From the sequence record OR258281.1: DNA of 64,000 nt; one strand, 5' to 3'. How positions within the stretch are numbered: the first letter of the stretch is position 1; every line of letters starts with the position of its first letter. The translations under genes and the position numbers were made by a program. Below the pieces are notes generated by a model that did no database searches, was not told where the DNA came from, and saw nothing but the letters and a program-made list of their open reading frames with translations. Shown here in pieces: positions 4,747 to 49,973 of the stretch.

Positions 4747-4822
4747 AGTACTATTAAAAGTATCTTGCAATATAATGTAGGGTACTTTATAATGGTACTT
4801 ATACAAACAAGGGGATATAGAA

Positions 4823-4948
4823 ATGGTTGATATTGAAAAAGTACGTGAAGTTATGGAACTACTGCGTGATCAGGGTTTTGTTAATGCTGATGATGATGAA
4901 GAGTTAGATACAGTAACAGAACTTGCATTTAACGCTTTCAATGATTAA
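4823..4948 (+). CDS. 41-aa acidic early protein (not in the ORF track)
   Basis: MVDIEKVREVMELLRDQGFVNADDDEELDTVTELAFNAFND, lying between two cassette promoters with an RBS. Confidence 0.75.
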   Translation: MVDIEKVREVMELLRDQGFVNADDDEELDTVTELAFNAFND

Positions 4949-5032
4949 GTACTGAAGTACTATTAAAAGTATCTTGCAATATATTGTAGGGTACTTTATA
5001 ATGGTACTTAACGAATCAACGGGGATATAAAA

Positions 5033-5269
5033 ATGGGTTCATATCGTATTACTAACAAAGATATCAATGAGAAGATTGATATCTTAAACGAGATGTTTAA
5101 GAATCGCGGCGTTGAGATTGTATTCAAAAATTCACCGCGTAATGATTATGCAGCGGTTGATTACCGTAAAGGTGAAGACAATCTGAATTTCATTTCCGGC
5201 GTTAGTAATCGCGAATGTTACAATATGTTAGAATGTGCGATTTCCGCGATTCACTTGCTAAGTGATTAA
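5033..5269 (+). CDS. Hypothetical early protein
   Basis: Cassette promoter and RBS. Confidence 0.8.
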   Translation: MGSYRITNKDINEKIDILNEMFKNRGVEIVFKNSPRNDYAAVDYRKGEDNLNFISGVSNRECYNMLECAISAIHLLSD

Positions 5270-5361
5270 GTACTTCAGTACTGAAGTATTATTAAAAGTA
5301 CCTTGCAATATATTGTAGGGTACTTTATAATGATACTTACCTTAACAAAGGGGATAGATAA

Positions 5362-5661
5362 ATGCAAGTTAACCTTCATGCCACCAGCTTTCGACTGCGT
5401 GATGATACTGAATCACTAAAAGAAACTGTCGGGCTTGTAAAGTTCCTGGAAGACCATAAAGTACCATTTACCCGGTATACTACGCCTAAAACCTTACAGA
5501 GTGGTATTACCTTCCCTGAAGAAAAGCGGGTACAGTGGCACGAAAACGATCGGGCTGTAGAAATTCCATGCAGTACTATTGAAGAGTTACAAAAGTACTG
5601 TAAAGATTATGATTGTACTTTTATAGTACATGACGAATACATACAAGTTACTTTCCCGTAA
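5362..5661 (+). CDS. Hypothetical early protein
   Basis: Cassette promoter and RBS. Confidence 0.8.
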   Translation: MQVNLHATSFRLRDDTESLKETVGLVKFLEDHKVPFTRYTTPKTLQSGITFPEEKRVQWHENDRAVEIPCSTIEELQKYCKDYDCTFIVHDEYIQVTFP

Positions 5662-14454: not shown

Positions 14455-14529
14455 TAATTGTGATCGTACCCCCAGGATAAAGATATTAAAAATAGTACTT
14501 GCATATCCTGGGGTACTTTGATAATATAA

Positions 14530-14705
14530 TTGCACTTAAGGACAATAGTCATTAGGTGCATGGTACTAATCAGTACCAATAACGTTTAGAGTAATTGCAT
14601 TGTACATGACGAAAGAACATCCTGCAAGGGGTGTATTTTGTGTGTAGTCCATTCTCCTGGTATGTTCTTTTAACGAATTACCCTTGCATACCAGGAGCTT
14701 TTTAT
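14530..14705 (+). ncRNA. Candidate structured RNA of about 170 nt
   Basis: Promoter TTGCAT near 14498; no ORF; 11-bp stem CTCCTGGTATG 14654-64 / CATACCAGGAG 14687-97 followed by a T-run. Confidence 0.35.
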
Positions 14706-14779
14706 GTTATTATTTTTATCGACCCCGAGGGGCGGATAGTTATATCTAAATTTTAGTACTATTACGGTACTGAAAAATC

Positions 14780-14808
14780 TGAAATGTTTTGTGTTTATGT
14801 TCTATACT
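14780..14808 (+). promoter_or_regulatory. Class-2 promoter TGAAAT-N12-TGTTCTATACT
   Basis: Same geometry at 41526, 45084 and 48604. Confidence 0.75.
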
Positions 14809-14822
14809 ACTGGTATAAAATT

Positions 14823-15375
14823 CTGAATGGTGTACCCGGTTAGTAGTGTTAAGTACTTAAGAGTTAGTACTTGATTGGTACAATACAATAATCCTGATCT
14901 TATCGAAAATGTAGATAGCAGATGAGCAGTCCATACAGTGCGATGTGCAAACGAGACCCGTGTAAATTACTCCAAGTTAATTCAGAGGACACGGCAATGC
15001 GGCACAATAAAGGTACTCAATAATACTGAGAAGTACCCTTGATAGACATATATGGTAAACACCATACCAAAGGTATAAGGGAGTTTACAGTACTAAAAAG
15101 GTTCTTTAGTGCTCTGGATGTATAATATAGATCCGTCCAGTTTTTGTCAAAGGATTTTTCCAGTACTGTAAACAGGTATTTGATTAGTTTGTGTTGATTA
15201 AGTACTTAGATACGTGATGAGCGTAGACCGTTGCAATAGAACACTAATAGGAAGAAACCGGGCAACCCGCTTCCGTCTGAATAAGAATTTAGTACACAAA
15301 ATGTTGATAGCACCAGCGTCAAGTTTCTTTCCCCCTTGTGGGGTATCGAAATGTATCAAAGAAACCGCGTCAAGT
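14823..15375 (+). ncRNA. Large structured ncRNA candidate, copy 1 (about 553 nt)
   Basis: Collinear homology to 48676-49262; 51-nt identical block at 14953-15003; compensatory changes in stems; no conserved ORF. Confidence 0.75.
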
Positions 15376-15594
15376 TATCATCATATAGTTGATTAAGTAC
15401 TTACAAGAGCGTAAGCGATTGGTGTACTTAATCACTAACGGTTTGTCAAAACCGTTTAGTACTAAAACCAGTACAAATACCAGTACTTAAGTACTACAAA
15501 AACTATTATTAAAAGTATTACAAATAGTACTTGTAGAACCAATACTATAAGTGTATAGTACTTACATCGAAACGAAATACAAGGAAGTAAAGAA

Positions 15595-15837
15595 ATGAGT
15601 TCAAGAATGAAGGTACTGAATAAAGTAGTACACGTATATAATGTTCCACAGAAATTCCTTGATAAATGCGTGGTACTGATTAAGCAGTACTTAGCAGGCG
15701 AATTATCAGGCAGGAAGTTAAACAACGGAAAATTTGAAGTACTATCGTTGGGTAGAGAATATCGTGTGCTGGTGGATGGTGATTCCTTTAGGGTTATGAA
15801 TCACAACCACTACAACAAATATATTGATGCAAGATAA
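15595..15837 (+). CDS. ParE/RelE-like toxin-fold small protein (orphan)
   Basis: KQYLAGELSGRKL...LSLGREYRVL...VMNHNHYN resembles minimal ParE-like proteins of plasmids and prophages. Confidence 0.45.
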   Translation: MSSRMKVLNKVVHVYNVPQKFLDKCVVLIKQYLAGELSGRKLNNGKFEVLSLGREYRVLVDGDSFRVMNHNHYNKYIDAR

Positions 15838-15907: not shown

Positions 15908-16279
15908 ATGAAAACTGTAACTACTTACTTCGCAACTCGCACTCTGGCCCGTAACGCTGTTGAAGCACTGAATGGCAAATTCAAAGACTTTGGTACTACT
16001 GCTGCTAAAGGTGAACGTTGGGCCGTGATCCATGAAGTAGCTGAAACTGTAATGGAAGAACAAATCCAGGTACAGGAAAAAGCGGCTGGTGCAGGCATTG
16101 GCAAGTCTTATGTACCGGATGATGAAATCAAAGCACAGATCGCATTGCTGGCCCGTTCAGTACAAAACCATAACGGTACTGTCCGTGTTATTAATCGCCG
16201 CCGGATGAATCGTAGTCACGCGGTGAACCTTAAAGGCAAAACTATCCCGGTAACTACTTACCATCGTCCAGCCGCGTAA
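15908..16279 (+). CDS. Hypothetical early protein
   Basis: Promoter and GGGGGAT RBS; start corrected. Confidence 0.8.
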   Translation: MKTVTTYFATRTLARNAVEALNGKFKDFGTTAAKGERWAVIHEVAETVMEEQIQVQEKAAGAGIGKSYVPDDEIKAQIALLARSVQNHNGTVRVINRRRMNRSHAVNLKGKTIPVTTYHRPAA

Positions 16280-16313
16280 CACTTGTACTTGTAGTAGTAC
16301 TCTATAGTAAATA

Positions 16314-16709
16314 ATGAAAACCTTATTAACATTGGAGTACTACTACATGCCTATTTCATTTGATGATGAACATCTAAACTCGCAAGATCCACGTAAGAAC
16401 AATGATAACGCTAAGTACAATGGCGGGATCGCTGGCACGTCTAAGAAGTGGGATCAATACCACAAGACTAACCCAGGCACAAAGAACGGCTTATACAAAG
16501 CAAGTCGCTCAGTGGGTACAGGTCAGGCGGGGATAGATGCGATGCAGCCCGGTGAAGTCACCGATACATCTACAATGAGTCCTGAAGAGAAGTTTCGTTA
16601 CATGCAGGCTTTAGGTCTATTAGGCGATAAACCGGTACAGGCACAAGCACAGCAAGTACCAGCTAAGCCAGTAATGCAACGTAACCAGCCATTCCGTAGA
16701 GGCCGGTAA
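16314..16709 (+). CDS. Hypothetical protein, probably disordered (start may be 16347)
   Basis: ORF rich in Q/N/G/P. Confidence 0.65.
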   Translation: MKTLLTLEYYYMPISFDDEHLNSQDPRKNNDNAKYNGGIAGTSKKWDQYHKTNPGTKNGLYKASRSVGTGQAGIDAMQPGEVTDTSTMSPEEKFRYMQALGLLGDKPVQAQAQQVPAKPVMQRNQPFRRGR

Positions 16710-16868
16710 GCAGTTTTAACACAAATAGTACTGTACATGGGTACAGTACTTTTAATGTGTACCTGGCGTTTATCCTAATCACACAAAATGATCAAATAAA
16801 TCGTACTTTAAACTTGTACAAGTTTAGAGGTTCATGTATAGTTAATTCATCGACGGGAACAACGGTAA

Positions 16869-17105
16869 ATGAGTTCAGAGACGCAAATACTGGTTCTTAA
16901 CGGTCAGAAGTTCACGATGACTTCTGGTGCAAGACAGATTGATAACGTTGGCGAGGTACTTAATTATCTTTCTTCTGACGATATAAAGAAAGTCCGAAGG
17001 GAAGCTAATATAAGTAAGATCGCAGTACGGCGAAATCCGGTACTAACCCGATTACTAAGCTGTATCTTATTGAAAAGTAGTCAAATTTTGAATGATCGAA
17101 CTTGA
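16869..17105 (+). CDS. Hypothetical protein
   Basis: 78-aa ORF. Confidence 0.6.
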   Translation: MSSETQILVLNGQKFTMTSGARQIDNVGEVLNYLSSDDIKKVRREANISKIAVRRNPVLTRLLSCILLKSSQILNDRT

Positions 17106-17236
17106 GTACTTATTTGATAAAATAGTTTGAAATTTGGCTTGCAATTAAATATTCAGTGCTATACTATACATGCATCCGGTAAGTTAAATGCACTTAAGGA
17201 TGCACTAAAACTACTTTTAATTGTGAGGATTTAACT

Positions 17237-17767
17237 ATGAACGCGACTAATACCACTACTAACCATAGCCGACTGACTCTTGTAAGTACTCTGGAGCAGG
17301 GCAAGCCGTCTATCGTAGCAGAAGTATTATACAAACAGGGTCGCACCGTTGCTGAAGTTAAGCAATTTGATAAAACCCTACGTAAAGCTGTTAAGCTGGC
17401 GAAATCATTGTTTCGTGAAGATGAGAAACGCCGCAAAGAACAGGAAAAAGAACGTATTGCAGCAGAGAAAGCTAAACAGCAACAGGAACAACTGTTACAG
17501 AAAAATGCTTCTCAGGCTATCGAAGCGGCGAAAAATGTACTTCTGGAAACGTTGATCGCTGGTGGTATGAGTGAGAAACAAGCGAAAGAAGTAGTAGCCC
17601 AGGAATTTAGCCATGTTTACCCAATGGGTAAAGTACAGGTATCATTCCGTGGCAAAACCTTTACTACTTCACTTCGCGGAAAAGCGTCAGATGATCTGAA
17701 AGAAGCACTCAAAGCTACTAATATGAGTCGCAAAAGTTTCATCGAACATTTCCAGGTACACGCATAA
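17237..17767 (+). CDS. H-NS-like protein, paralog of 7204-7950
   Basis: LVSTLEQGKPSIVAEVLYKQGRT vs LMSALESGDALAVAEVLIKQGRT; ETLIAGGMSE; SLRGKASDDLKEALKATNMSRKSFI. Confidence 0.5.
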   Translation: MNATNTTTNHSRLTLVSTLEQGKPSIVAEVLYKQGRTVAEVKQFDKTLRKAVKLAKSLFREDEKRRKEQEKERIAAEKAKQQQEQLLQKNASQAIEAAKNVLLETLIAGGMSEKQAKEVVAQEFSHVYPMGKVQVSFRGKTFTTSLRGKASDDLKEALKATNMSRKSFIEHFQVHA

Positions 17768-17799
17768 GTACTGTATAGTGTTACAGTGCTGTATATAAA

Positions 17800-17823
17800 A
17801 GCGGGTTAATTAACCCGCTTTTC
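17800..17823 (+). terminator. Intrinsic terminator (possibly bidirectional)
   Basis: AAAGCGGGTT-AATT-AACCCGCTTTT. Confidence 0.75.
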
Positions 17824-17898
17824 TTGTCTCTTGTGCTTTACTTTGGTTGACAAGCCGATTATAATCTTCACAGTGAAGTTGAAGAAAGGATATAAATT

Positions 17899-18171
17899 AT
17901 GTGTACCCAAAAGAGAAGGATCACTTTTTGTAGATTTGTATCATTGGACAAAAGCCGTACTTTGAAAGAAGAAGTTCAGGATCTGGTAGAAGTACCTGAA
18001 AGTACTTTTAACGAACTGATAACTTTTCAAGATCATTTGTTTAGTGATGATAACGTTAGATGTATAGGGTACATTACTCGTTATTATAATGATTACAATG
18101 AATTACTTGCTATCCAGGACGGCATATCAAAATTCTATGTAAAGGGTACACTGATTGAAACAAAACATTGA
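17899..18171 (+). CDS. Hypothetical protein
   Basis: TTGACA promoter and AAGGA RBS; terminator at about 18176-18205. Confidence 0.75.
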   Translation: MCTQKRRITFCRFVSLDKSRTLKEEVQDLVEVPESTFNELITFQDHLFSDDNVRCIGYITRYYNDYNELLAIQDGISKFYVKGTLIETKH

Positions 18172-18302
18172 TTAAGAAGCCTGCTAACTATTAGCAGGCT
18201 TTTTTGTTTTGTACTAAAAACAAAATAGTACTGAAAACTGCTTGCACTATATCTCATAATACCGTATTATATAAACATACAAACAAATACGGGGATAGAG
18301 AA

Positions 18303-18842
18303 ATGAAATTCAACGAACTTAACGAGAAACAACAAGCTAAAGTACTGGATATGTACCGTTATGCTGAAACTGGTTCTTCTGATTGGTACTCTGAAATCAA
18401 ATCAGATTTTCATGAAGAGTTAGAAGCCGCTGGCTTTAATAATGTTGATAGTCAATTCAGCGGTTTTTGTGTCCAGGGCGACGGGGCAAGTTTCACCTCT
18501 GAAGATATCAACGTCAAGGAAGTACTGACGCATTTAGGAAAGTACCAGTACTATGCACAGAATCACGGTTCATATGTAATTGATAATATGACCGCCGAAA
18601 TTGTACGTAATGACTCGCATTATGTACATGAATACACGATGAGTATTAACATCGTAGAAGGCGATGATGTTTCAGAAGTTAAAAAAGAAATTCTTGAGTA
18701 CGCACGCAACAAGTGCCGTGAGTACTACAAGAAGCTGAATGAAGAATCTGATCGCCTTGAATCGGATGAATCTGTAAAAGAGTACATCGAAGCAAATGAT
18801 ATCGAGTTCGATGTGAAGAAAGAGAACGTGACTTATATCTGA
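18303..18842 (+). CDS. Acidic protein resembling the plasmid family annotated as antitoxin of toxin-antitoxin stability system
   Basis: KFNELNEKQQAKVLD...DW...FSGFCVQGDGASF motif; start corrected. Confidence 0.55.
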   Translation: MKFNELNEKQQAKVLDMYRYAETGSSDWYSEIKSDFHEELEAAGFNNVDSQFSGFCVQGDGASFTSEDINVKEVLTHLGKYQYYAQNHGSYVIDNMTAEIVRNDSHYVHEYTMSINIVEGDDVSEVKKEILEYARNKCREYYKKLNEESDRLESDESVKEYIEANDIEFDVKKENVTYI

Positions 18843-18915
18843 TAATGTATTAAGAGTACCTTGCATTTAATATCAGGGTACTCTATAATACAGTTATTGC
18901 TTAAGAGGGATAACT

Positions 18916-19008
18916 ATGAAAGATGAAATTATCTCATTCAGTACCTTTATCGGCGGATTATTTTGCTTCTTTTTATTAGGCGTACTCGCCTACTTTGCAC
19001 AAGGTTAA
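18916..19008 (+). CDS. 30-aa membrane peptide (not in the ORF track)
   Basis: MKDEIISFSTFIGGLFCFFLLGVLAYFAQG behind a cassette promoter. Confidence 0.6.
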   Translation: MKDEIISFSTFIGGLFCFFLLGVLAYFAQG

Positions 19009-19013
19009 TCTAT

Positions 19014-19388
19014 ATGAAACGTACTATCATCGCTTTAGCTTTATTCTCATTCAGTACTGTATCTTTCGCCAGTAATTCTATTGGCCTTAATGAAGTACAG
19101 AAAACTGATCTGTATTGTGCAGGCTGGAACCAGGCACATATGGAAGCATTTCCTGATGATACCGGGGAATATAACGAAGCACTTAACGCCGTTAACTTCT
19201 TCTATATGAAAGCGGAAGATGATGGATTAAACGACGATGATAGTGCTAAAAGTGCTTTGATGGATAAAGCCTGGAATAAGGGTTATCAGGCATACAATGG
19301 TAATCGTGCCAGTACTATGCCGGATAAATGCTTTAAGCTCTATTCAAAGCACGTACAATCATTAACTGATGCAGAATTGCAGGGTTAA
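19014..19388 (+). CDS. Exported protein with a Sec signal peptide
   Basis: MKRTIIALALFSFSTVSFA; two Cys; start corrected. Confidence 0.75.
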   Translation: MKRTIIALALFSFSTVSFASNSIGLNEVQKTDLYCAGWNQAHMEAFPDDTGEYNEALNAVNFFYMKAEDDGLNDDDSAKSALMDKAWNKGYQAYNGNRASTMPDKCFKLYSKHVQSLTDAELQG

Positions 19389-19461
19389 TAATTATTATAT
19401 AAGCCTTGATTAATTCAAGGCTTTTTTGTATACTCCTTATTAATAACTGATAGGGGGATAT

Positions 19462-19647
19462 ATGTTTATTCAGATCTACGACAAATCAAAGTACAAAAAG
19501 TTCACAGACGCAAGAAAGAACAATGATTATCGTACACTGGAAGTACCAGATGATACAAACCTATTAGTTATTCATAACCTGATTAGTACTGTACAGAGTA
19601 TGTGCAACTATAAATCATTGGCATGGCTTCAGGAGAACAGAATATGA
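19462..19647 (+). CDS. Hypothetical protein
   Basis: Promoter and RBS. Confidence 0.7.
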   Translation: MFIQIYDKSKYKKFTDARKNNDYRTLEVPDDTNLLVIHNLISTVQSMCNYKSLAWLQENRI

Positions 19648-19877
19648 GTACTATACACCAGTATGCTATTGTTGATGAAGAAACTGATTTAGTTATCGGT
19701 AAGTACGTAAGTACTCAAGCCCCGGCTAAAATGCGTAATATACCTTATGCAATAATGGATATCAACGACGTTAAAAGTACTGGTAAAGCATTCTTGAGCC
19801 GGTCAGTTAAGTACTGGGATCAAGTTAAACATCCACTGTACAACTACTTTAAAGATGATAGCGTAGTACTGTTATAA
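19644..19877 (+). CDS. Hypothetical protein
   Basis: ATGA overlap; start corrected. Confidence 0.7.
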   Translation: MSTIHQYAIVDEETDLVIGKYVSTQAPAKMRNIPYAIMDINDVKSTGKAFLSRSVKYWDQVKHPLYNYFKDDSVVLL

Positions 19878-19949
19878 TACATTAAAAGTACCTTGCAAAT
19901 AGTATCAGGGTACTTTATAATGTACTTATACAAACAAGGGGATAAAGAA

Positions 19950-20261
19950 ATGAAAGATAAACTGATTCAAGTAATCAAAGATACCCACGATAGTCAAGAA
20001 AAACGATTCAATCCTGACTTTTTTGTTGACAGCAAACGTATGTCAGACGAAGGTATGTTGATTGTTAAATCACTGATCGGAAATCTGTTTGTCAAAGGTT
20101 ATTCCGAAGAATCAAGAAAAAACTTTGAAGTATTCAAAGACTCTGAAAACTATCGTATTCGTCTTTGGGTATTTGATAGCAACAAGCCTGAAACTTTTAC
20201 TTTCATGTGCAACGCGAATGAAATGGATATCGCTATTAAGTACATTCAGGATTCAATGTAA
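19950..20261 (+). CDS. Hypothetical early protein
   Basis: Cassette promoter; start corrected. Confidence 0.8.
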   Translation: MKDKLIQVIKDTHDSQEKRFNPDFFVDSKRMSDEGMLIVKSLIGNLFVKGYSEESRKNFEVFKDSENYRIRLWVFDSNKPETFTFMCNANEMDIAIKYIQDSM

Positions 20262-20334
20262 GAGTACAATAAAAGTACTTGCAATATATCAGCGAGTACT
20301 TTATAATGTACTTATACAAACGAGGGGATAAGAA

Positions 20335-20601
20335 ATGAGCAGAACTGTTAATTTTAACCCACAAGGTATGGATATTGTATATCTTGGGTTTGATCGTCCT
20401 GAATACATGCAAAGTATTGAAGCATGTTGCGTATTCAAGTACAAAGGATACGAAATTAGTATCAGTACTAAAGGCCGCTACAAAGGTGCGTGCCTGAATG
20501 AACATCTGGTTATTAGCCCGAATGGTACTGAAACGTATATTGCTGATACTGTACAGGCGGCAATTGAATTTGTTGATGCACAATTGAGTACTCAATCATG
20601 A
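20335..20601 (+). CDS. Hypothetical early protein
   Basis: Cassette promoter and RBS. Confidence 0.8.
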   Translation: MSRTVNFNPQGMDIVYLGFDRPEYMQSIEACCVFKYKGYEISISTKGRYKGACLNEHLVISPNGTETYIADTVQAAIEFVDAQLSTQS

Positions 20602-20867
20602 AAGGTAATCGGAAAAAAGTCGATACTGATTGTATCTACAATGTAGTACTTTCGCGGTTCCATCATGAAAGTATTAATGATATGGGTAAACACCAAGTGC
20701 GTAAATTTAAACGTACTGTCGGTATTACTCCTAAAGTAATTGAAATGCTTTCGTATGGTTATCAGTTACCTAGTGCAAAAAGTACCGTAGTTGCTGATTG
20801 TAATGATGATTGGGTTAGTATTGATCCCGGTTCTTTTTGGGAAGAATTTTACGAAACTGAAAAATAA
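20598..20867 (+). CDS. Hypothetical protein
   Basis: ATGA overlap. Confidence 0.7.
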   Translation: MKGNRKKVDTDCIYNVVLSRFHHESINDMGKHQVRKFKRTVGITPKVIEMLSYGYQLPSAKSTVVADCNDDWVSIDPGSFWEEFYETEK

Positions 20868-20939
20868 TACATTAAAAGTATCTTGCATAAGTTATCAGGG
20901 TACTTTATAATGAATTATCAAATCAAGAGGGATAAGCAA

Positions 20940-21422
20940 ATGACTGAATTACCATTACACTATCATATCGCTGATTCAGTTGATATGAACAAATGGCCTG
21001 AGCATTATAATTATTGTGCTCTACAGGCTAACGGTACTCTTTCTTTGTTTGTCTCTCAGCCAGTATTCAAAGAATATCAGAAAAGTGAAAAAATTTATGG
21101 TCATACTGGATATTACCTAAGAACTGAATACTGGAGCGAATTTCGTTGGGAAGGGTCTTTGTCTATCTTTTACCCTATCAAAATCGCTCGGAACCGGTAT
21201 TACGGAGAAATGTTTTTCTCGCGTGAGCAAATCCAGCAGATCAAAGATAATTATGCAAATGACATTCAAGTACAAAAAGAAATAGTACTTGAACAACAAC
21301 GAAAAGAAAAAGAAAAGATACTAAAAGAAGAAAAGAAAGAAAGTTTTCATGCAATGTTACTTGGAATTACTATAGTTTTAGGTATAATAATTATAACAAT
21401 AGCTAAGGCGTTAGAACCATGA
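20940..21422 (+). CDS. Early protein with a C-terminal transmembrane helix
   Basis: Cassette promoter; AMLLGITIVLGIIIITIA. Confidence 0.75.
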   Translation: MTELPLHYHIADSVDMNKWPEHYNYCALQANGTLSLFVSQPVFKEYQKSEKIYGHTGYYLRTEYWSEFRWEGSLSIFYPIKIARNRYYGEMFFSREQIQQIKDNYANDIQVQKEIVLEQQRKEKEKILKEEKKESFHAMLLGITIVLGIIIITIAKALEP

Positions 21423-21655
21423 AAATTGTACCAGTGCCAGAAGTACAGAAGCCTAATAATTATCTAGATAAGGAATTAGATTTCTACCGGGATTTACCGA
21501 AAAGAAAAAAGGTTCCTTGCAAATCCACCAGCACTGTAGTACATTTACACGAGCACAAGATCATAGTAGGTTATGAAAATCTTGGGCCAAATAAAGTACC
21601 TAAAATGACTCCTGAACGCGTCCAGGCTCATATTGAATGGTTGAAAAGTTTATAG
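21419..21655 (+). CDS. Hypothetical protein
   Basis: ATGA overlap. Confidence 0.7.
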   Translation: MKIVPVPEVQKPNNYLDKELDFYRDLPKRKKVPCKSTSTVVHLHEHKIIVGYENLGPNKVPKMTPERVQAHIEWLKSL

Positions 21656-21661
21656 GATCAT

Positions 21662-21883
21662 ATGATGAAGTACAAAATCTATTACCGTATTAAACGCAAA
21701 AAATCACTTGCTAATAGCATTAAGATGGAGTTTAATCTTGAAGCTGAAGATTATCTTAAAGCGGTTGATAAACTTACCCGGTCTATTACAGACTACGAGC
21801 CGGATGTAGAAGTAATTATAATACAAGCATTCTGTGAAGTATATAACAACAACGAAACTGTAGTACTTCCAGAAGATTTATAA
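21662..21883 (+). CDS. Hypothetical protein
   Basis: AGGA RBS. Confidence 0.7.
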   Translation: MMKYKIYYRIKRKKSLANSIKMEFNLEAEDYLKAVDKLTRSITDYEPDVEVIIIQAFCEVYNNNETVVLPEDL

Positions 21884-22093
21884 GAATAAGCACAATCGGC
21901 CTACTATCCCCCTTGCACAATCAGGCCGGTTGTGCTACCTTATTACTTGTCCTCTAGGGGCGGGGAGATATAGTACTAAATGTAAATGATTCTCATTCGT
22001 AATAAAATAATTAAGAATAGTACTAAAAAAGACTTGCACTATAGTTAAGGAAATATTATAGTACTTAACAGGAACAGAGAGGGGGATAACGAG

Positions 22094-22390
22094 ATGCAAG
22101 CAAGTACCTTTATCAAAACTGTACGCACTAATCTGGAAACTGTAATTACTGAATCACAACGCCAGGAATATAAGGCAGAAGTGATCATTAAGCAATTCAA
22201 AGAACGTATGAAGAATGTTCGTGAGTTAGTACTGAAACAAATTACTAACCGCAAAGAACAACAAAAGTATCTTAAGGTACTTAATGATTGTAATGTACAA
22301 TATAAAGATAAGCATTATGATCTTATTGTGATGGACTTCAAAGAATTAAAAACTAAGCTACCTTACATGATCGATTTCATTAAATTGTAA
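22094..22390 (+). CDS. Hypothetical basic early protein
   Basis: Promoter and RBS. Confidence 0.75.
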   Translation: MQASTFIKTVRTNLETVITESQRQEYKAEVIIKQFKERMKNVRELVLKQITNRKEQQKYLKVLNDCNVQYKDKHYDLIVMDFKELKTKLPYMIDFIKL

Positions 22391-22465
22391 GAGTACAATA
22401 AAAGTACTTGTACTATATCAGCAAGTACTTTATAATGTATTCATCAATCAAGAGGGGATAGAAAA

Positions 22466-22699
22466 ATGCATAACAAGTTTAAAGTACGCAAGTGGTCTGA
22501 CGATAAGTTGCAAGCCCGTCCGTATGATGTTGTTTATCTCGATCTGGCTAACAACAACTTGCACTTTCATCCAGATATGCAGTACAGCAATGAAGTAGAT
22601 GCCGCTGTTGCTACTGAAAAGCTGAACCACGCCAGGCAAGCCGCTAACCCTAAACAGTGGCCCATCGATGGCCCTATCCCTGAAGAATATTTGCACTAA
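22466..22699 (+). CDS. Hypothetical early protein
   Basis: Cassette promoter and RBS. Confidence 0.8.
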   Translation: MHNKFKVRKWSDDKLQARPYDVVYLDLANNNLHFHPDMQYSNEVDAAVATEKLNHARQAANPKQWPIDGPIPEEYLH

Positions 22700-22789
22700 A
22701 AAACAAAAGTAGTACTGAAAAAAGACTTGCATATAACATCTAATAGTACTATAATAAGTACATACAAAAAGATATAGGGGAATAAAATC

Positions 22790-23692
22790 ATGGTTATGTC
22801 GTATTCAAACAAAACAGAAAAGCTGATTCCAAGTATCGGTCGTGAACTTCGGGCTAAGTCTCGCCCCCTTACCAATACTGAAATGTTTCAGGCTGCACCG
22901 TCACTGTTTCAGGCACAGGCACACGATTCGCGTTCAAGCCGTTTCAAGCCTATCAGTACTATTGACGTAGTTGATGCGTTACGCACAGAAGGCTTTGAAC
23001 CCTTCTCGGTACTGCAATCCCGTGCTCGCGATGAAAGTAAAATCGACTTCACTAAACATCAGGTACGTTTCCGTAAACGTGAAGAACTGGAAGGCGAACT
23101 GTTGTTGCCTGAATGGAATGAAATCATTCTGGTTAATGCCAACGATGGTACAAGTTCTTACCAGGTAATGGCTGGTGGATTCCGCCAGGCTTGTGCAAAT
23201 GGTTTAGTACTCGGAGACATTAACTGTACTCAACGTGTACACCATAAAGGTTCTAACATCCAAAAAGATGTTATCGAAGGCGTGTACACAGTAGTAAATC
23301 AATTCAAAATGATTGATGAATACAAAGAAGATATGCAACGTACTATGTTGTCAATTGAAGACCGTAATGGTCTGGCAATGGCTGCAATGATCTTCGCCGG
23401 GTTTGATTATCAGGATCTTCCTTATGATCATAAGTTACTGCTGAAAACCCATCGCCATGCTGATAGCGGTCACGATCTCTGGAGTACTTTTAACGTAGTA
23501 CAAGAGAACCTTGTAAAAGGCGGCGTGAAGTATAAGAAGTTTGACGAAGAAAAACAAACAGTACGTAATGTGAGTACTAAAGGTATTACCAGCATCCAAA
23601 AGAATATCCAGGTTAATCAGGGCGTCTGGACTGCTGCTAAAATGCTGATCAATAGTAATCAGGAAAAACAGGACGTACTTGCTTTAGTCTAA
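22790..23692 (+). CDS. DUF932 family protein
   Basis: HDSRSSRFKPISTIDVVDALRTEGF, FTKHQVRFR, EIILVNANDGTSSYQVMAGGFRQACANGLV, DLWSTFNVVQENL. Confidence 0.85.
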   Translation: MVMSYSNKTEKLIPSIGRELRAKSRPLTNTEMFQAAPSLFQAQAHDSRSSRFKPISTIDVVDALRTEGFEPFSVLQSRARDESKIDFTKHQVRFRKREELEGELLLPEWNEIILVNANDGTSSYQVMAGGFRQACANGLVLGDINCTQRVHHKGSNIQKDVIEGVYTVVNQFKMIDEYKEDMQRTMLSIEDRNGLAMAAMIFAGFDYQDLPYDHKLLLKTHRHADSGHDLWSTFNVVQENLVKGGVKYKKFDEEKQTVRNVSTKGITSIQKNIQVNQGVWTAAKMLINSNQEKQDVLALV

Positions 23693-24253
23693 TCCCCCGT
23701 AAAACGCTCTACAAGGAACGTAGAGCCGTTTTACAAAGTACTTGATAAAAGATATTAGGTACTCTGTAAAACGTAATAGAAAGGCAACCAGAAATGAATA
23801 ATATAATCTTTACTGGTGGATTTGCTTTAATCTATATGCTAGTATATGGCTATCAGGAATATGGTTCAGTACTGAATGGCTTAAAACATTTTGCAAAGTT
23901 CATAGTGGGGATGTTATAATGTTTAAACTAATCAGCCTCGTTTGTATTCTGGTAGTAGTATGCCTTATCTGGCAGACTGCCGCAATCTATGTCAGTGCTA
24001 CCCTGGGTTATATGTCTGACTTCATTGCTAACATCAGTGCATTCAGCTTTATCAAAATTCAATAGTACTGTACCGGATTCTATATAATTTCGAGTACTCA
24101 ACAAAGTAAACACGAATCATAGAAATTTTGGTACACCCTTGAGCACTCAGGGAAAATTTCGCAAGTACGTGAGCACATATGCGGATCATGCCTGTACCCA
24201 TACATTACACGTACAGATACACATCATACAAATATATACGCGAGGGTACTTGC

Positions 24254-24619
24254 ATGTACTTACCTAATAATGTATCATTAATATCAGTTGATGGTTCAGT
24301 GAGAATCAGTAAATGTACAGATGAAGTTAATCCGTACCTGGTTTATCATTTAGGTACTTGCACAGTGCATAAAAGTACCTTAGAGGAAGCTATCGATCAT
24401 TGTACTAAACGTTATCAAGCTCGCTTCCCAAAAGAAACAAAAGTACTTGCAAAAGATATTAAACGTGGTATGATCGTTTGTACAGAAGGTTATCCATACG
24501 GTTCAGTTAAGTTCAATAACCGTAATGTTGATGAAGACCAGGATCATCGCCAGTTAGTACTCTTCTCGCAAGATACTATTACGTTAGATTCCAGTGCTGT
24601 ACTGACAGTACTGAAATAA
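24254..24619 (+). CDS. Hypothetical protein
   Basis: GAGGG RBS; start corrected. Confidence 0.65.
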   Translation: MYLPNNVSLISVDGSVRISKCTDEVNPYLVYHLGTCTVHKSTLEEAIDHCTKRYQARFPKETKVLAKDIKRGMIVCTEGYPYGSVKFNNRNVDEDQDHRQLVLFSQDTITLDSSAVLTVLK

Positions 24620-25077
24620 TACCAAATATGGCCGGTACTTGACAAAACTCTATCCCCCTAGAGTCAAGTACTGGCCGCCTCTTTTTATCCCCAAAATACA
24701 TTTTTACCCTAACCCCTAATTGTATCACATCCTGAGCCAAAAAACAAGTCCGACCAGCACGAATTGCTTAGATGCGAATACGAATGATAATGATTCTCAT
24801 TTCAGTCAAAGGCCACATCTACCCGCCCCTCGGGGTCAGTATTAATATAACAGAACTGAAAAATAATTGCAAGTACTACAGCACTATTTGTTTAAATGCG
24901 AATGAGAATCATTTACAACAATGATCGCATCTCCCCACCCCTCGGGGTCAACTACATAGTACTAAACCAGTACTGAAAAAGCAAGGGAATATATCAAAAT
25001 AAAGGTACTTATTTGTACTTGCAGAATCATTTCAGGAAAGGTATAGTACTTACATCGAAATTACGGGGATAGACAAA

Positions 25078-25485
25078 ATGAATAAAGAACAGGCTATTGC
25101 AGTACTGCGAGTACTGAAGAACATCCGCACTTGTGTAGATAATCAAGATACTTATATCCCTGGCGTGGGCGATTGCCATAATCAGGATGCAAGATATCGC
25201 AGTCCGTTTAACCTGTCTAAATCTTTCGGGATTTGCTGGCATGTATACGCCCACACATCCGGCGATCTCGGGATCGATATTGAGTTTCTTAAACCGGTAT
25301 TTGTTGAATTAGGTTATAAGTCTGATGCCTACCCGGTGGAAAGTACTGTACTGCCTGAAGGCGACAATGATTATTGGTTTGAAAATCGTAGTAATTACGA
25401 TCTGTACTTCAGCGATAACAAGTACTCAAAAGTACGGTATGAGTTATTAGAAAAGCTGATTAAGTACTTTGAAAATAAATTGTAA
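25078..25485 (+). CDS. Hypothetical early protein
   Basis: Promoter and RBS. Confidence 0.8.
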   Translation: MNKEQAIAVLRVLKNIRTCVDNQDTYIPGVGDCHNQDARYRSPFNLSKSFGICWHVYAHTSGDLGIDIEFLKPVFVELGYKSDAYPVESTVLPEGDNDYWFENRSNYDLYFSDNKYSKVRYELLEKLIKYFENKL

Positions 25486-25584
25486 TTGGTAATAATCAGT
25501 ACTTGCAAAGTACAGTACTATCAATTACTATTAGTACTCAAAGCGGGGAAATGACTTCCCCGCCGTAATAGGGGATTAAAGATT

Positions 25585-25893
25585 ATGGCACGTAAAACCA
25601 CTAAGATTTGTTCACTGATGTTATCAGAGCACGATTCACAACGTAATGCGATCCTTCTCAATAAAAGCACCACAGATAAAGAGAAAGTACTGCAATTGCG
25701 TGAAATTAATGCAATGATAGAATCGTTGCTGATGAAATCAAACTGCTATCATGGTTTCCAGTACCCGGATTTAGAGGGTTTGCGTAAAGTTCAGGCAGAA
25801 TATGAATCCACGCCAGGCAGCGACTACGGTACTGTAGTACTTGATTCTGTAGCTGAAAATAACCGTATGTATATCGGTCTCCGCGACTGGTAA
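25585..25893 (+). CDS. Hypothetical early protein
   Basis: Promoter, 5-prime hairpin leader and RBS. Confidence 0.8.
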   Translation: MARKTTKICSLMLSEHDSQRNAILLNKSTTDKEKVLQLREINAMIESLLMKSNCYHGFQYPDLEGLRKVQAEYESTPGSDYGTVVLDSVAENNRMYIGLRDW

Positions 25894-25989
25894 AAGTTTT
25901 TATTAAAAGTACCTTGCATATATCGTAGGGTACTTTATAATGAAATCTAAATCAGAGAATGATTCTTTGATGTACCAGGGGGAAAGATT

Positions 25990-26199
25990 ATGGCACTGTA
26001 TACCCGTTCTTTATTCAGTACTAAAAACATCGCGACACAAGTCGAAAGATATTACATGATGGTTTGTGATGCTCCACGCCGAATCAGTAAGGCGGAATAC
26101 CTGGAGTACAAACAAACGGCGATCCGTAAAGATTCAATGAGTACCGAAATTACTAAAAAATGCATCCGTCATTTTACTACCTGTTACTATGACGTATAA
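25990..26199 (+). CDS. Hypothetical early protein
   Basis: Cassette promoter. Confidence 0.75.
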   Translation: MALYTRSLFSTKNIATQVERYYMMVCDAPRRISKAEYLEYKQTAIRKDSMSTEITKKCIRHFTTCYYDV

Positions 26200-26428
26200 A
26201 ATATTTTCGAAATAATGTAATTGCCGCTTGTATTCCAGGCGGCAGTTTGATACATTGAAGTTGACCCCGAGGGGTGGGGAGATCCAATCATATACATAGC
26301 AGGCTAATAGTTCAGTACTGAACTAACAAAAATAGTACTAAAATAAATTTGCAATATATCCATTCATCCTGTACATTAGTACTTAACAGGTAAGCAATGA
26401 CGCTTAACCTAATATGGGGATTAAAATT

Positions 26429-36885: not shown

Positions 36886-37369
36886 AGAAGAAAAGATACT
36901 AAAGGTACTGGAATATTTTTGTGATACGAAAACTAAAAATGTTCTATACTCTCTTTATAAAGAAATTGTAAAACGTGATCTAATTCGCAATCCCGGTGCT
37001 GAATATTCATTTATGTTAAAGAATGACATAACTTTAAATTACAGTGCTCAAGAATTTTCATTATCACTTCATGGGTTTGGATGGATTACTACATCTTCTA
37101 GCTATCAGATTTACGTTGACAAATATACCAAAAGTACCTCAGAATTATTCTTGTACCAGTATAACGATGCTGAGCACAGTGTTGATTTAAATTCAGTACA
37201 TGAAGATGATGTATTATTTAACAGTACTTTAACTATTCCTGAAACGTACTGGAATAACTTTTGTTTAAGTTATATAATATCTTTTTTTATTAGTCATTTA
37301 CCACCTGGTATTTGTACTTATACCCGCAGATTTATGCTTAAGGCTATGATTGATGAATATAAATTATGA
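36878..37369 (+). CDS. FNLS-motif family member 10
   Basis: HEDDVLFNSTLT. Confidence 0.8.
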   Translation: MNEEEKILKVLEYFCDTKTKNVLYSLYKEIVKRDLIRNPGAEYSFMLKNDITLNYSAQEFSLSLHGFGWITTSSSYQIYVDKYTKSTSELFLYQYNDAEHSVDLNSVHEDDVLFNSTLTIPETYWNNFCLSYIISFFISHLPPGICTYTRRFMLKAMIDEYKL

Positions 37370-47531: not shown

Positions 47532-48588
47532 AAGCAATACTCACATTGAGCATCTGGATGATACGGTACTTTACAATCCTGATATTACCATCAAGCACCT
47601 GAATAAAGTACAACAAGGTACTGAAACAAGTACTCTTAAATGGGATGGTGCACCAAGTATTGTACTAGGTAAATTTGACCATATTGCAATGGTTGGTACA
47701 AAATCTTTCTTCAGTAAAAATGAAACTAACTATGTAAGTACTGAAGAAATTATTGCTGCCGGTCTGTCATCTGAACTTTCATATATCCTCATCGTTGCCC
47801 TTGAATACGCTAAGGACCATATAAATGAAGGTCAGTTGATTCAGGGTGATGTAATGTTTTGTACTGATGATAAGAAGGTTCAAAATGATAAAATCCAGTT
47901 CGGTTTAAATCTTATTAAGTACGCAGTTCCTAAAGAATTGCCTGAATATGAACTTATCAAAAATGCGAAGATTGGTATTGCATTCCACACTGAATATGAT
48001 GCAGATTATAATGCATCACCAATCAAAGAGTTGCCTGAAAGTTCTGAAGTTCTATACGTATTTGATCAGTACCAGTGTACTCTTCAGGATGCAGAAAACC
48101 AGAGCTTTCATGATAATTCAACATATTGCTCTATGCTGATAGACTATGCTCATAAGATTAAGCAATTTCAGGGTACTACATTGCACAATCTGACTGAGTA
48201 TCATGAATTATACCGTAAGTACAAAACGATGCGGCTGCGTTATTTTGATATGGTATGTAGTGCTGACCATGAAGATTTTGAAAAATTCTGTTTTGGAGAA
48301 CTGTCAGAAAAGTTATTCAATCCAGAATATAAATATCTCGCTAGACAGAATGCACTTCAGCATATGTTGGAATTTAACAAAGTACTAAAAGATACTTCTA
48401 AGTACTTTATGTTACTTAGTGCATTTACATTTACTTCACAGCAACTAGTAATACATAACTTAGAAAGTACTAAAGAACATAATATTAGTGCAGAACATGA
48501 AGGATTAGTAGTTAGTACTGATGAATACATTATTAAGTACGTTGATAAGAAGAACTTTACGAAGTTAAACAATAGTAAACGTACTTAA
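47509..48588 (+). CDS. Ligase-like covalent nucleotidyltransferase-superfamily protein (HxEH...KWDG type)
   Basis: THIEHLDD; motif I TLKWDGAPS; GTKSFF; QGDVMF; motif IV EHEGLVV; motif V IIKYVD. Confidence 0.65.
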   Translation: MTRQLKNKSNTHIEHLDDTVLYNPDITIKHLNKVQQGTETSTLKWDGAPSIVLGKFDHIAMVGTKSFFSKNETNYVSTEEIIAAGLSSELSYILIVALEYAKDHINEGQLIQGDVMFCTDDKKVQNDKIQFGLNLIKYAVPKELPEYELIKNAKIGIAFHTEYDADYNASPIKELPESSEVLYVFDQYQCTLQDAENQSFHDNSTYCSMLIDYAHKIKQFQGTTLHNLTEYHELYRKYKTMRLRYFDMVCSADHEDFEKFCFGELSEKLFNPEYKYLARQNALQHMLEFNKVLKDTSKYFMLLSAFTFTSQQLVIHNLESTKEHNISAEHEGLVVSTDEYIIKYVDKKNFTKLNNSKRT

Positions 48589-48603
48589 CAGAACATTTTT
48601 TTC

Positions 48604-48632
48604 TGAAACTTATTGGAAATGTGTTCTATACT
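48604..48632 (+). promoter_or_regulatory. Class-2 promoter TGAAAC-N12-TGTTCTATACT
   Basis: Immediately upstream of ncRNA copy 2. Confidence 0.75.
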
Positions 48633-48675
48633 ATAGGGAGAAAGATATTTTCTCTCTTTTAATTTAGACAAAAAC

Positions 48676-49262
48676 CTGACTGATATACCCGCTTAGTAGT
48701 GGATTATACATAAGAGATTGTGTGATCCTGGTATAATAATTAAAACCTGATCCTATCGAAAAGTAGATGGCAGATGAGTTGTTCAGACAGAACGATGAGC
48801 AAATGAGACCCGTGTAAATTACTCCAAGTTAATTCAGAGGACACGGCAATGCGGCTCAATAAAGATGGAAAGAGAATACAAGTACTCCATCCTAGATAGA
48901 CATATAAGGATCGCACCTTACCAACATGTATAAGGGATTCTATTACTCGTAATGGATTTGGCGACGGAATTATACAATATAGTTACGTCCAGAATTTGAG
49001 TACTTAGAAGACGTATTTGAAGTGTTCATGTACTTTAAATGCGTAGAGTAGTGATGAGCTACGACCGTTGCAATATGAACTGCGATAGGAAGAAACAGGG
49101 CAACCCGCTTCCGTTTAGTACAAGATAATTGTATCTGAAATTCGTAACATGAATTGATACTGGCTACCAGCGTCAAGATTAAAACCAAAGAAGTATTTTG
49201 GAATTTAGTTTTTCATTCCCCCGTTGTGGGGGATAGAATTGAATCAACAAACCGCGTCAAGT
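48676..49262 (+). ncRNA. Large structured ncRNA candidate, copy 2 (about 587 nt)
   Basis: Homolog of 14823-15375; identical block at 48805-48855; terminator at about 49416-49443. Confidence 0.75.
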
Positions 49263-49457
49263 ATAGTAGCTGTTAAAGCTTTGAGTACTTCTTAGGATTT
49301 AATCTAGTAAATCAAAGAATATAAATTATTCATAAGAAATGAACGTAGTGAATTTCGTTGGATAATTTAGGATTAGATGAACGAAGTTCAGATAAGCCTT
49401 GTAGTTGAAAACCAAAAGAGAGATCACTGTATCTCTCTTTTTTATTGTGAGTCATAA

Positions 49458-49973
49458 ATGCATAGCGTATATAAACAGTTTAATGGTAGTACAAGTCCTG
49501 CAATGCCGTCAGTTTTTAATGGATATAAAATTGTTTTTCAGCCCAATGGCAAAATCCTTTGGTCTATAGAGAAATACCAAAATAATATACGAATGCCTGA
49601 TTTCAAAATACGTTTCCGTCCTAGTGCATATGATAATGTACTTAATTCAGTACTCATCAATTACTCATGCATCATCTACAACTCAAATGGTGCAAAACTA
49701 CGAGAGTATTACACAGATGATTTAAACTCATTTTATGGTGAAAGAGTCGTTTATAGAGATGGAAAAAAGTGCAGTGAGTACTGGAATAAAATTAATGAAG
49801 TAACCACAGAGGTATTACAGATCACGGGTGGAGTACTTGATTCTGAACTGTTCAGCACTGAAGACAGATTCAATCTGTATATTAAATATGGTACACCATT
49901 TAAGTTCTATGATGAATTCAGAATTGATGATAAAGAAATACAGGAAATAGTTGAGTTCTGCAAGAGCAGATAA
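49458..49973 (+). CDS. FNLS-motif family member 23
   Basis: STEDRFNLYIKY. Confidence 0.75.
   Translation: MHSVYKQFNGSTSPAMPSVFNGYKIVFQPNGKILWSIEKYQNNIRMPDFKIRFRPSAYDNVLNSVLINYSCIIYNSNGAKLREYYTDDLNSFYGERVVYRDGKKCSEYWNKINEVTTEVLQITGGVLDSELFSTEDRFNLYIKYGTPFKFYDEFRIDDKEIQEIVEFCKSR

Follow-up and report, generated by a model that had tools for sequence, protein, structure and literature searches.

The first 64,000 nucleotides (nt) of Xanthomonas phage XaC1 (positions 1 to 64000 of OR258281.1, 348,967 bp, to which they are identical by blastn), a stretch that we call the window, contain two noncoding regions, 14823-15375 (copy A) and 48676-49262 (copy B), each of which very probably encodes, on the plus strand and behind its own promoter of a phage-specific class, a large folded RNA that belongs to no catalogued family. 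XaC1 is a jumbo phage related to RaK2, 121Q, PBECO4, GAP32, and CBB. An earlier note, made from the letters of the window alone, had read the two regions as diverged copies of a large covarying structured noncoding RNA (ncRNA). A wider alignment revealed strong covariation in both halves of the RNA, in agreement with that reading; the number of copies in the genome, however, is five rather than two, as counted with a covariance model (CM) and blastn. The covariation is compensatory and strand specific and no open reading frame (ORF) is conserved, which together mark the element as a structured ncRNA.

Sequence, promoter, and fold of the RNA family

Copies A and B are collinear: an alignment of 533 positions has 392 identities (73.5%), and shuffles are expected to give 0 such matches. 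Both copies lie in unannotated gaps that have plus-strand genes on either side (14455-15594, 1.1 kb, for copy A and 48589-49457, 0.87 kb, for copy B). Three shared blocks that the earlier note had picked out were each located in both copies. A 51-nt block is identical between the two (14953-15003 and 48805-48855); a 30-nt block, ATAGGAAGAAAC[C/A]GGGCAACCCGCTTCCGT, begins at 15247 in copy A and 49085 in copy B; and the 3′ block AAACCGCGTCAAGT begins at 15362 and 49249. We found no ORF common to copies A and B, as had been claimed, so that a conserved short ORF does not explain the homology.

The same promoter was also said to precede both copies, and this holds: a −35-like CTGAAA, an 18-nt spacer, and TGTTC-TATACT lie at 14779-14808 ahead of copy A, and CTGAAA-N18-TATACT lies at 48603-48632 ahead of copy B, both on the plus strand and with the core TGTTCTATACT in common. 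Every family copy is preceded by a −10 box of the TGTGnTATAAT type and a −35 box TGAAAC or TGGAAC, and the promoter class overall can be written as −35 TGAAAC(G) and −10 TATAAT or TATACT. A promoter class with a −35 TGAAACG instead of TTGACA has been described in CBB and is also present in GAP32; in CBB, 11 of the 18 promoters of the TGAAACG class precede a block with many genes for DNA synthesis, and this phage encodes its own sigma factor and has a T4-like replisome (PMC5259590). A sigma factor is also encoded by XaC1 (XaC1_549). Three more exact plus-strand copies of TGTTCTATACT, at 36940, 41544, and 45102, indicate that the promoter class also drives other units in the region. Downstream of the copy B promoter is a terminator-like hairpin (48635-48657), with the predicted transcription start inside its 5′ arm; judged from the sequence, transcripts arriving from upstream would stop at this hairpin, and those from the copy B promoter would not carry it in full.

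For the covariation analysis, we put together 49 distinct full-length sequences and tested two alignments, of the 3′ domain (n = 45) and the 5′ domain (n = 38), against structures that we specified ourselves, with slid pairing partners and 500 shuffles as controls. Together, the two domains have 63 tested base pairs, which make up 13 helices, two of them pseudoknots; these were 95 to 97% paired, compared with 31 to 56% in the slid controls, and 46 of the 63 pairs had compensatory changes on both sides. The complete fold thus has 13 helices or more. In the 3′ domain, the 26 pairs were formed in 97.5% of the alignment cells (47 to 56% when slid), with compensatory changes in 17; the corresponding figures for the 37 pairs of the 5′ domain were 94.9% (31 to 38% when slid) and 29. 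None of the 500 shuffles reached the observed score in either domain. Many pairs are U-G (about half of the sequences in the C/G hairpin described below), and these would become C-A mismatches on the opposite strand. As they fit the plus strand only, the structure belongs to the plus-strand RNA.

The 3′ domain consists of a three-way junction of helices Pa, Pc, and Pb, a GUUGC-GCAAC pseudoknot formed with the 15-nt loop of Pc, and a C-run/G-run hairpin (the C/G hairpin). The 5′ domain has a pseudoknot, P2, with the loop of hairpin Py, a bulged hairpin Px with the conserved loop GAAAANGUA, a helix P3 that encloses P4, and then P5 and P6. Several stems that had been read from the two copies alone recur in the structure shared by the whole family: CCGTGT/ACACGG corresponds to P4, GGAAG/CTTCC to Pc, and TATGG/CCATA of copy A, with its counterpart TAAGG/CCTTA of copy B, to P6. 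The pairing of TGTACC/GGTACA in copy A and TATACC/GGTATA in copy B is real too but belongs to an insertion that is peculiar to the XaC1 lineage and is not found family-wide. What had been taken for a GCAA loop on Pc is actually the 15-nt loop, whose GCAAC pairs with the upstream GUUGC to make the pseudoknot. Long unpaired stretches are nearly invariant (AGAUGAG, GGCAAUGCGGC..AUAAAG, GAUAGACAUAU, UAAGGGAG, CGACCGUU, and GAAAC.G..AACCCGC), which suggests that they make tertiary contacts or form a binding or active site.

Two repeats in the 3′ part, R1 and R2, are alike (A[C/U]C.N.CGUCA[A]G) and vary in parallel across the family; no pairing partner for either could be fixed from the alignments. 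A local hairpin for R1 (GACGA/UCGUC) fits many sequences and fails in some paralogue types, and a GAC/GUC pairing proposed by RNAalifold is invariant except in two sequences that break it; both were set aside. As a family average, the GC content of the RNA is 0.36 to 0.48, compared with 0.32 in its flanks, and a 50-nt AT-rich trough of 0.26 follows R2. The core is about 560 to 620 nt long, and most copies have a further tail of about 150 nt.

We regard the RNA as a new class, with no Rfam family and no paper that we could find describing it, jumbo-phage papers included. A cmscan of the whole window against Rfam 15 gave 0 matches at the gathering score, and at E ≤ 10 the segments 14600-15600 and 48500-49500 matched only miRNA, snoRNA, and sRNA families at chance level. 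ROOL (RF03087) and GOLLD (RF01998) had no match in the window at the gathering score or in the two copies at E ≤ 10, and ARAGORN found no tRNA or tmRNA genes in the window, so that there are no tRNA neighbors there. Of the two options that the earlier note had left, membership of a class such as ROOL or GOLLD thus found no support in Rfam 15, and an undescribed class agrees with the missing match, the covariation, and the lack of a conserved ORF. Its statement that no hallmarks of group I or group II introns, RNase P RNA, tmRNA, or 6S RNA are seen agrees with Rfam 15 and ARAGORN, which also gave no match to signal recognition particle (SRP) RNA; the intron models had no match at E ≤ 10, and all copies are intergenic, each with a promoter of its own in front. 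Motifs of hammerhead ribozymes, RNase P CR-IV/V, group I P/Q/R/S, and C/D boxes were compared with the RNA and rejected, none being collinear or backed by a model. A sequence in an optional module, CAAUAUAGAUCCGUCC, bears a loose likeness to the group I S element.

Four "lncRNAs" defined by transcriptome sequencing (RNA-seq) have been reported for PA5oct, a jumbo phage related to XaC1 (PMC7318152). We rejected two of these, ncRNA002 and ncRNA004, as homologues: neither had a match at E ≤ 10 to CM R1, a 107-position covariance model that covers the 3′ core only. The end of ncRNA004 (1080-1115 of the extracted locus) has a hairpin, UUCCUUCCC-AAAC-GGGGAGGAA, that resembles the C-run/G-run hairpin and also has no CM match; it may represent very distant kinship or coincidence. 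Bacteria and phages are known to make very few RNAs that are so large (>500 nt) and have a complex conserved fold, ROOL, GOLLD, and OLE being examples. Each such RNA known so far has opened a new question.

Distribution in jumbo phages and bacterial islands

The family is conserved across the whole RaK2-like clade. Searches with blastn found it in 61 to 71 phage records at 132 to 291 places, usually four or five per genome, in phages whose hosts are Escherichia, Salmonella, Klebsiella, Erwinia, Serratia, Yersinia, Cronobacter, and Pectobacterium, and two pattern scans of IMG/VR gave 61 loci. In XaC1, CM R1 placed five copies, all on the plus strand, with 3′ cores starting at 15,222, 49,059, 117,699, 209,388, and 303,610; the CM scan covered the genome apart from two stretches, and blastn counts five places in total. 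Copy A scored 84.9 bits (E = 2e−15, on 15222-15323) and copy B 91 bits (E = 1e−16). The five XaC1 copies are each other's closest relatives (68 to 80% identity), and the smallest gap between them is 34 kb. Immediately upstream of the third copy (117.7 kb) is an HNH endonuclease gene (116689-117324).

GAP32, CBB, and Serratia phage BF have five copies each, all on the plus strand and 53 to 84 kb apart, at about 33 to 36, 93 to 99, 175 to 178, 259 to 262, and 336 to 341 kb. The same genome positions, a single strand, and a spacing of 50 to 95 kb recur in several genera, and in every genome and metagenomic contig examined all copies are on one strand. If five points were placed at random on the GAP32 circle, the smallest gap would be at least the observed 53 kb with a probability of about 0.005; the arrangement is inherited, however, and therefore counts as a single observation. 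In the group of GAP32, CBB, BF, and Yersinia phages, the paralogues cluster by position across genera, which indicates that the duplications are old and that every copy has been retained. The downstream genes vary with the position of the paralogue, which speaks against a fixed downstream partner gene.

Full-length copies also occur in bacteria. A scan of bacterial genomes followed by the CM yielded nine bacterial contigs with scores of 77 to 94 bits: Serratia fonticola (a complete chromosome), Serratia sp., Citrobacter amalonaticus, Enterobacter chinensis, Silvania, Buttiauxella, two further Enterobacteriaceae assemblies, and a 2.8-kb contig that is assigned to Clostridium and is probably misbinned. 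Among complete Escherichia coli genomes, 2 of 5,426 have a copy. No match to the RNA was found by blastn in the PLSDB plasmids.

The bacterial copies lie in islands, one RNA copy to an island, with a low GC content (0.30 to 0.40) within host DNA of 0.55 to 0.60. At most of these loci, a gene for a tyrosine integrase or large serine recombinase comes first. The RNA is next, ahead of an oppositely oriented gene for a CI-like S24 repressor, and then come genes for a Cro-like winged-helix protein and a 286-amino-acid protein; from the Cro-like gene onward, the orientation is again that of the RNA. The order ends with genes for an LprI-like protein and a DNA invertase, which were seen together only in the Buttiauxella locus. 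The 286-amino-acid protein (F1), which is conserved in the islands, had no match in Pfam, PHROG, or PADLOC, and a tblastn search of 50,697 phage records also gave none. The S. fonticola island differs, with an integrase, two ParB/RepB-like genes, and then the RNA on the opposite strand, behind a phage-type promoter (TTGAAAC-N17-TGTGCTATACT). At the island edge next to this RNA are two tandem rof genes (4775-5490 of the locus) of intermediate GC content; rof encodes a modulator of Rho-dependent termination. E. coli LR-29-1 has an island of about 10.5 kb between ffs and ybaA (15997-26341 of the locus), also arranged differently from most, in which the RNA occupies an unannotated gap and which holds the candidate defense system PDC-M45. 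PDC-M45 pairs a dual-OB protein with DUF488 and adjoins DUF4326, and XaC1 itself encodes a DUF4326 protein (XaC1_214). PDC-S73 is also among the island cargo. The islands look like satellites or defense islands responsive to jumbo phages.

In a tree of the RNA, the XaC1 clade groups with eight of the island copies (97/98 support), the "341-kb" type with the one from Citrobacter (96/90), and the endonuclease VII type with the one from E. coli (88/86). With island copies in three places of the tree, there have been at least three transfers of promoter-plus-RNA units between jumbo phages and islands. OR258281.1 names Xanthomonas vesicatoria as the host of XaC1; the GC content of the phage genome is about 29 to 41%, all its relatives infect Enterobacterales, and its RNA copies are closest to RNAs of enterobacterial islands. 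The stated host may deserve a check.

Possible roles of the RNA

As the RNA is uncatalogued, present in five copies, and recurrent in islands, it probably does something important. The role that we favor, with a probability of roughly one in three, is that it benefits the DNA carrying it by serving as the primer RNA of a replication origin. The copies in islands are intact, their promoter, on which they appear to depend, is of the phage type, and a working copy acting in trans would only help the phage; the repeated capture therefore suggests that the unit benefits its own DNA. In the origin model, the phage transcription machinery would fire the RNA promoter after infection. The folded transcript would then stay on its template near its 3′ part, like ColE1 RNA II or the T4 ori(uvsY) and ori(34) transcripts; this part comprises repeats R1 and R2, a U-run, and the C-run/G-run hairpin, after which the sequence is AT rich. 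There the transcript would be the primer from which the T4-like replisome of the phage starts leading-strand synthesis. The genome of about 350 kb would thus be served by five origins on one strand, and an origin-bearing island would be amplified by the infecting jumbo phage. The timing of transcription, the action in cis, and the priming are what we infer here. The promoter class, the dispersed same-strand copies, the capture by islands, and the AT-rich trough after R2 lend such an origin indirect support.

ColE1 RNA II is a folded primer of about 550 nt, a size similar to that of the present RNA. In T4, which has several origins per genome, replication is primed by transcripts from middle promoters that act as the origins, and a plasmid given such an origin is replicated and packaged once the cell is infected; the promoter class of the present RNA is, for its part, linked to DNA-synthesis genes. 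There is, however, no sequence similarity to ColE1 RNA II or to the T4 origins, and no antisense regulator like RNA I was seen for this RNA. Further points weigh against a primer. T4 origin transcripts need no elaborate fold, and that of this RNA is far more conserved and knotted than such origins require; so many invariant junction bases, together with pseudoknots, are more typical of ribozymes, riboswitches, and the RNAs of ribonucleoproteins (RNPs) or scaffolds. We saw no skew signal, the GC skew of the RNA being that of its flanks and the cumulative skew having no inflection at the copies. At four of the five genome positions, a plus-strand ORF starts 85 to 165 nt after R2 with no terminator between, as in a leader. 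The spacing is one inherited observation, and in XaC1 the smallest gap is just 34 kb. Finally, an island could profit from a copy acting in trans if the RNA gave immunity or defense. We regard as doubtful the wider proposal that the phage copies are structure-dependent RNA-primed origins (or other elements benefiting their own DNA) under the phage sigma factor and that the islands are the first recognized jumbo-phage satellites, which would use a stolen origin RNA so that the helper phage amplifies them.

Nearly as likely as an origin, though still tentative, is an ornate RNA of the ROOL, GOLLD, or OLE kind that would act in trans, as a free folded molecule, in the role of a homo- or hetero-oligomeric scaffold or cage, RNP component, ribozyme, or decoy for a host or phage factor, made abundantly from several strong promoters, and that islands would carry as immunity or antiphage cargo. 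The depth of structural conservation favors this possibility, with a complex fold, two pseudoknots, and many invariant unpaired bases, and so do the multiple copies, the existence of a self-contained promoter-to-terminator unit, the candidate defense cargo of the islands (PDC-M45 and PDC-S73), and the variation of downstream genes between paralogues, which leaves no fixed target in cis. ROOL and GOLLD are likewise highly structured RNAs of about 0.5 to 0.8 kb with pseudoknots, and they share the setting in phages and prophage-like elements. The present RNA differs from them in lacking an Rfam 15 match and, in the window, nearby tRNA genes, and in belonging to jumbo phages of Gram-negative enterobacteria with five dispersed copies per genome; its multicopy organization and link to islands have no counterpart among ROOL and GOLLD. 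Another phage-encoded structured RNA, the phi29 packaging RNA (pRNA), acts as a multimer in a DNA transaction but is 120 to 174 nt long, single copy, and unrelated in sequence. Action in trans would not need the uniform strand and the dispersed, position-conserved placement, no partner protein gene accompanies the RNA, and the island copies, intact and scoring as high as phage copies, are not obvious dominant-negative decoys, nor is it evident what an island would gain from a phage RNA working in trans. An unlikely role is that of an antitermination RNA acting in cis at the head of operons, as the put sites of HK022 and the EAR element do; the nascent RNA would remain bound to the polymerase that transcribes it, or modify it, and make it processive, which would let middle-phase transcription read through terminators for tens of kilobases and, in islands, run across the repressor gene into the cro-side operon upon infection. 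Like putL, putR, and EAR, the copies directly follow a promoter, where a long operon of the same orientation begins, have terminators downstream, and occur more than once per phage. Each opens its transcription unit directly after an upstream terminator and is co-oriented with the genes; the terminator-free plus-strand ORFs at four of five positions fit such a role, as does the island order of integrase, RNA, opposite-strand cI, and then cro and later genes on the RNA strand. In 22 of the 49 phage copies, a canonical terminator (a stem and U7-8) lies between R1 and the C/G hairpin, and conserved sequence runs on past it, and the intrinsic terminator of copy B (49414-49441) ends 17 nt ahead of the start of XaC1_103, which has no promoter of its own. 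The known put and EAR RNAs, however, are about 70 to 120 nt with two stem-loops, and some 560 nt with two pseudoknots far exceeds any known antitermination RNA. Moreover, the copy on the endonuclease VII side, conserved across genera, has no downstream operon and ends at a bidirectional terminator facing minus-strand baseplate genes, which weighs against a role as a leader only.

A selfish mobile cassette, such as a degenerate intron without an ORF or another RNA-based element spreading without serving its carrier, would account for the multiple copies in unrelated contexts, the repeated transfer between phages and islands, the HNH endonuclease gene adjoining the 117.7-kb copy, and the likeness of R1 and R2, as in duplicated target or junction sequences. 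We consider it very unlikely: Rfam gave no group I or II intron match at E ≤ 10, each copy has its own promoter and sits between genes rather than within one, positions have long been stable across genera, the paralogues are under purifying selection with compensatory changes, and no polymorphism of empty and filled sites was seen. That no RNA is made, and that the unit is instead a repeat acting as DNA (an array of protein-binding sites, for instance) or the remnant of a protein gene, is highly improbable. Its repetition and dispersal would fit, as would the small hypothetical ORFs annotated there in some records. Against this reading stand the compensatory double changes in 46 of 63 pairs, the U-G pairs, which the other strand would have as C-A, and the lack of an ORF common to the copies.

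The combination of five same-strand, position-conserved copies in 350 kb, a promoter class linked to DNA synthesis, and repeated transfer into islands is unusual. Whether origin RNA, antitermination device, scaffold, or ribozyme, the RNA would be a new player in jumbo-phage biology and would direct attention to phage-responsive chromosomal islands as a new class. Its presence in the cultivable coliphages 121Q, PBECO4, and phAPEC6, for which laboratory E. coli is a host, makes its role directly testable.

Positions of the RNA features in the two copies

All features below are on the plus strand. The conserved core of copy A spans 14815-15375; its start is approximate, placed from the −10 box, and its end is that of R2. 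The 5′ strand of pseudoknot P2, CUGAAUGG, is at 14823-14830, and its partner in the Py loop, CCAUACAG, at 14931-14938, with seven of eight pairs compensatory; these coordinates were taken straight from the sequence, as the alignment misplaces the 5′ end of XaC1. Between the two strands is the 5′ insertion of the XaC1 lineage (14831-14882), in which UGUACC/GGUACA surrounds the hairpin AAGUACU-UAAGAGUU-AGUACUU; its counterpart in copy B is UAUACC/GGUAUA (48684/48730), and other phages have one short hairpin at this site. Hairpin Px (CUG..CU-U-AUC/GAU-AG..CAG, 14894-14921), with the conserved loop GAAAAUGUA, is 92.7% paired and compensatory in seven of eight pairs. It is followed by hairpin Py (GCA/UGC, 14926-14941), which is 100% paired and whose 10-nt loop makes P2; its pair types are UA 23, AU 9, and CG 6. 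The long-range helix P3 (UGUGC at 14944-48 and GCACA at 15002-06; 14944-15006) encloses the 51-nt identical block and the covarying helix P4 (CCGUGU at 14958-63 and ACACGG at 14989-94). Hairpin P5 (GGUAC/GUACC, 15012-15037) is compensatory in all five pairs, and hairpin P6 (UAUG/CAUA, 15051-15066) is flanked by the invariant GAUAGACAUAU and UAAGGGAG.

The variable middle region of copy A (15087-15221) has lineage-specific hairpins, including the module UAUAAUAUAGAUCCGUCCAG, which in other paralogues is inside helix Pb. A hairpin module, (U)ACAAUAUAGAUCCGUCC(A), at 15117-15140 in copy A and 48976-48993 in copy B, is inserted at differing points across the family, after UAAGGGAG in some paralogues and within helix Pb in others; it seems to be a transposable structural module and is perhaps an element for tertiary contacts. 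In the 3′ domain, the three-way junction with its pseudoknot occupies 15230-15293, with helices 96 to 100% paired and 14 of 18 pairs compensatory: Pa (ACUAA at 15243-47 and UUAGU at 15289-93), Pc (GGAAG at 15250-54 and CUUCC at 15270-74), and Pb (15277-79 and 15283-85), all defined on the 3′-domain alignment, and the pseudoknot of GUUGC (15230-34) with GCAAC in the Pc loop (15262-66). Repeat R1 (ACCAGCGUCAAG, 15312-15323), the C-run/G-run hairpin (CCCCC-UUGU-GGGG, 15327-15348, 93% paired), and repeat R2 (AAACCGCGUCAAGU, 15362-15375), the last strongly conserved block, complete the copy.

Copy B has its conserved core at 48640-49262, with the same helices. Its 5′ domain includes pseudoknot P2 (48676-83 and 48783-90), hairpin Px (48747-73), helices P3 (48796-800 and 48854-58) and P4 (48810-13 and 48843-46), and hairpins P5 (48864-68 and 48887-91) and P6 (48905-08 and 48917-20). 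In its 3′ domain are the GUUGC/GCAAC pseudoknot (49067-71 and 49100-04), helices Pa (49081-85 and 49142-46) and Pc (49088-92 and 49108-12), repeat R1 (49166-77), the C/G hairpin (49215-36), and repeat R2 (49249-62). The 3′ tail of copy B (49263-49445) has a hairpin at 49336-49356, whose loop GAACGUAGUGA is kept in the family, ahead of the terminator. About half of all copies have this tail hairpin with its conserved loop GAACGNAGUGA, among them four of the five in XaC1, copy A being the exception.

The palindrome AGTACT occurs 365 times in the window, compared with 25.6 expected from shuffles (a roughly 14-fold excess), both in genes and between them, and several variable hairpins of the RNA are made of it (for example, 14851-14872). 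In addition, many 200-nt bins between about 2000 and 36000 contain exact 20-mers that recur elsewhere in the window, which suggests that paralogous small genes or repeated regulatory cassettes are present in its first half.

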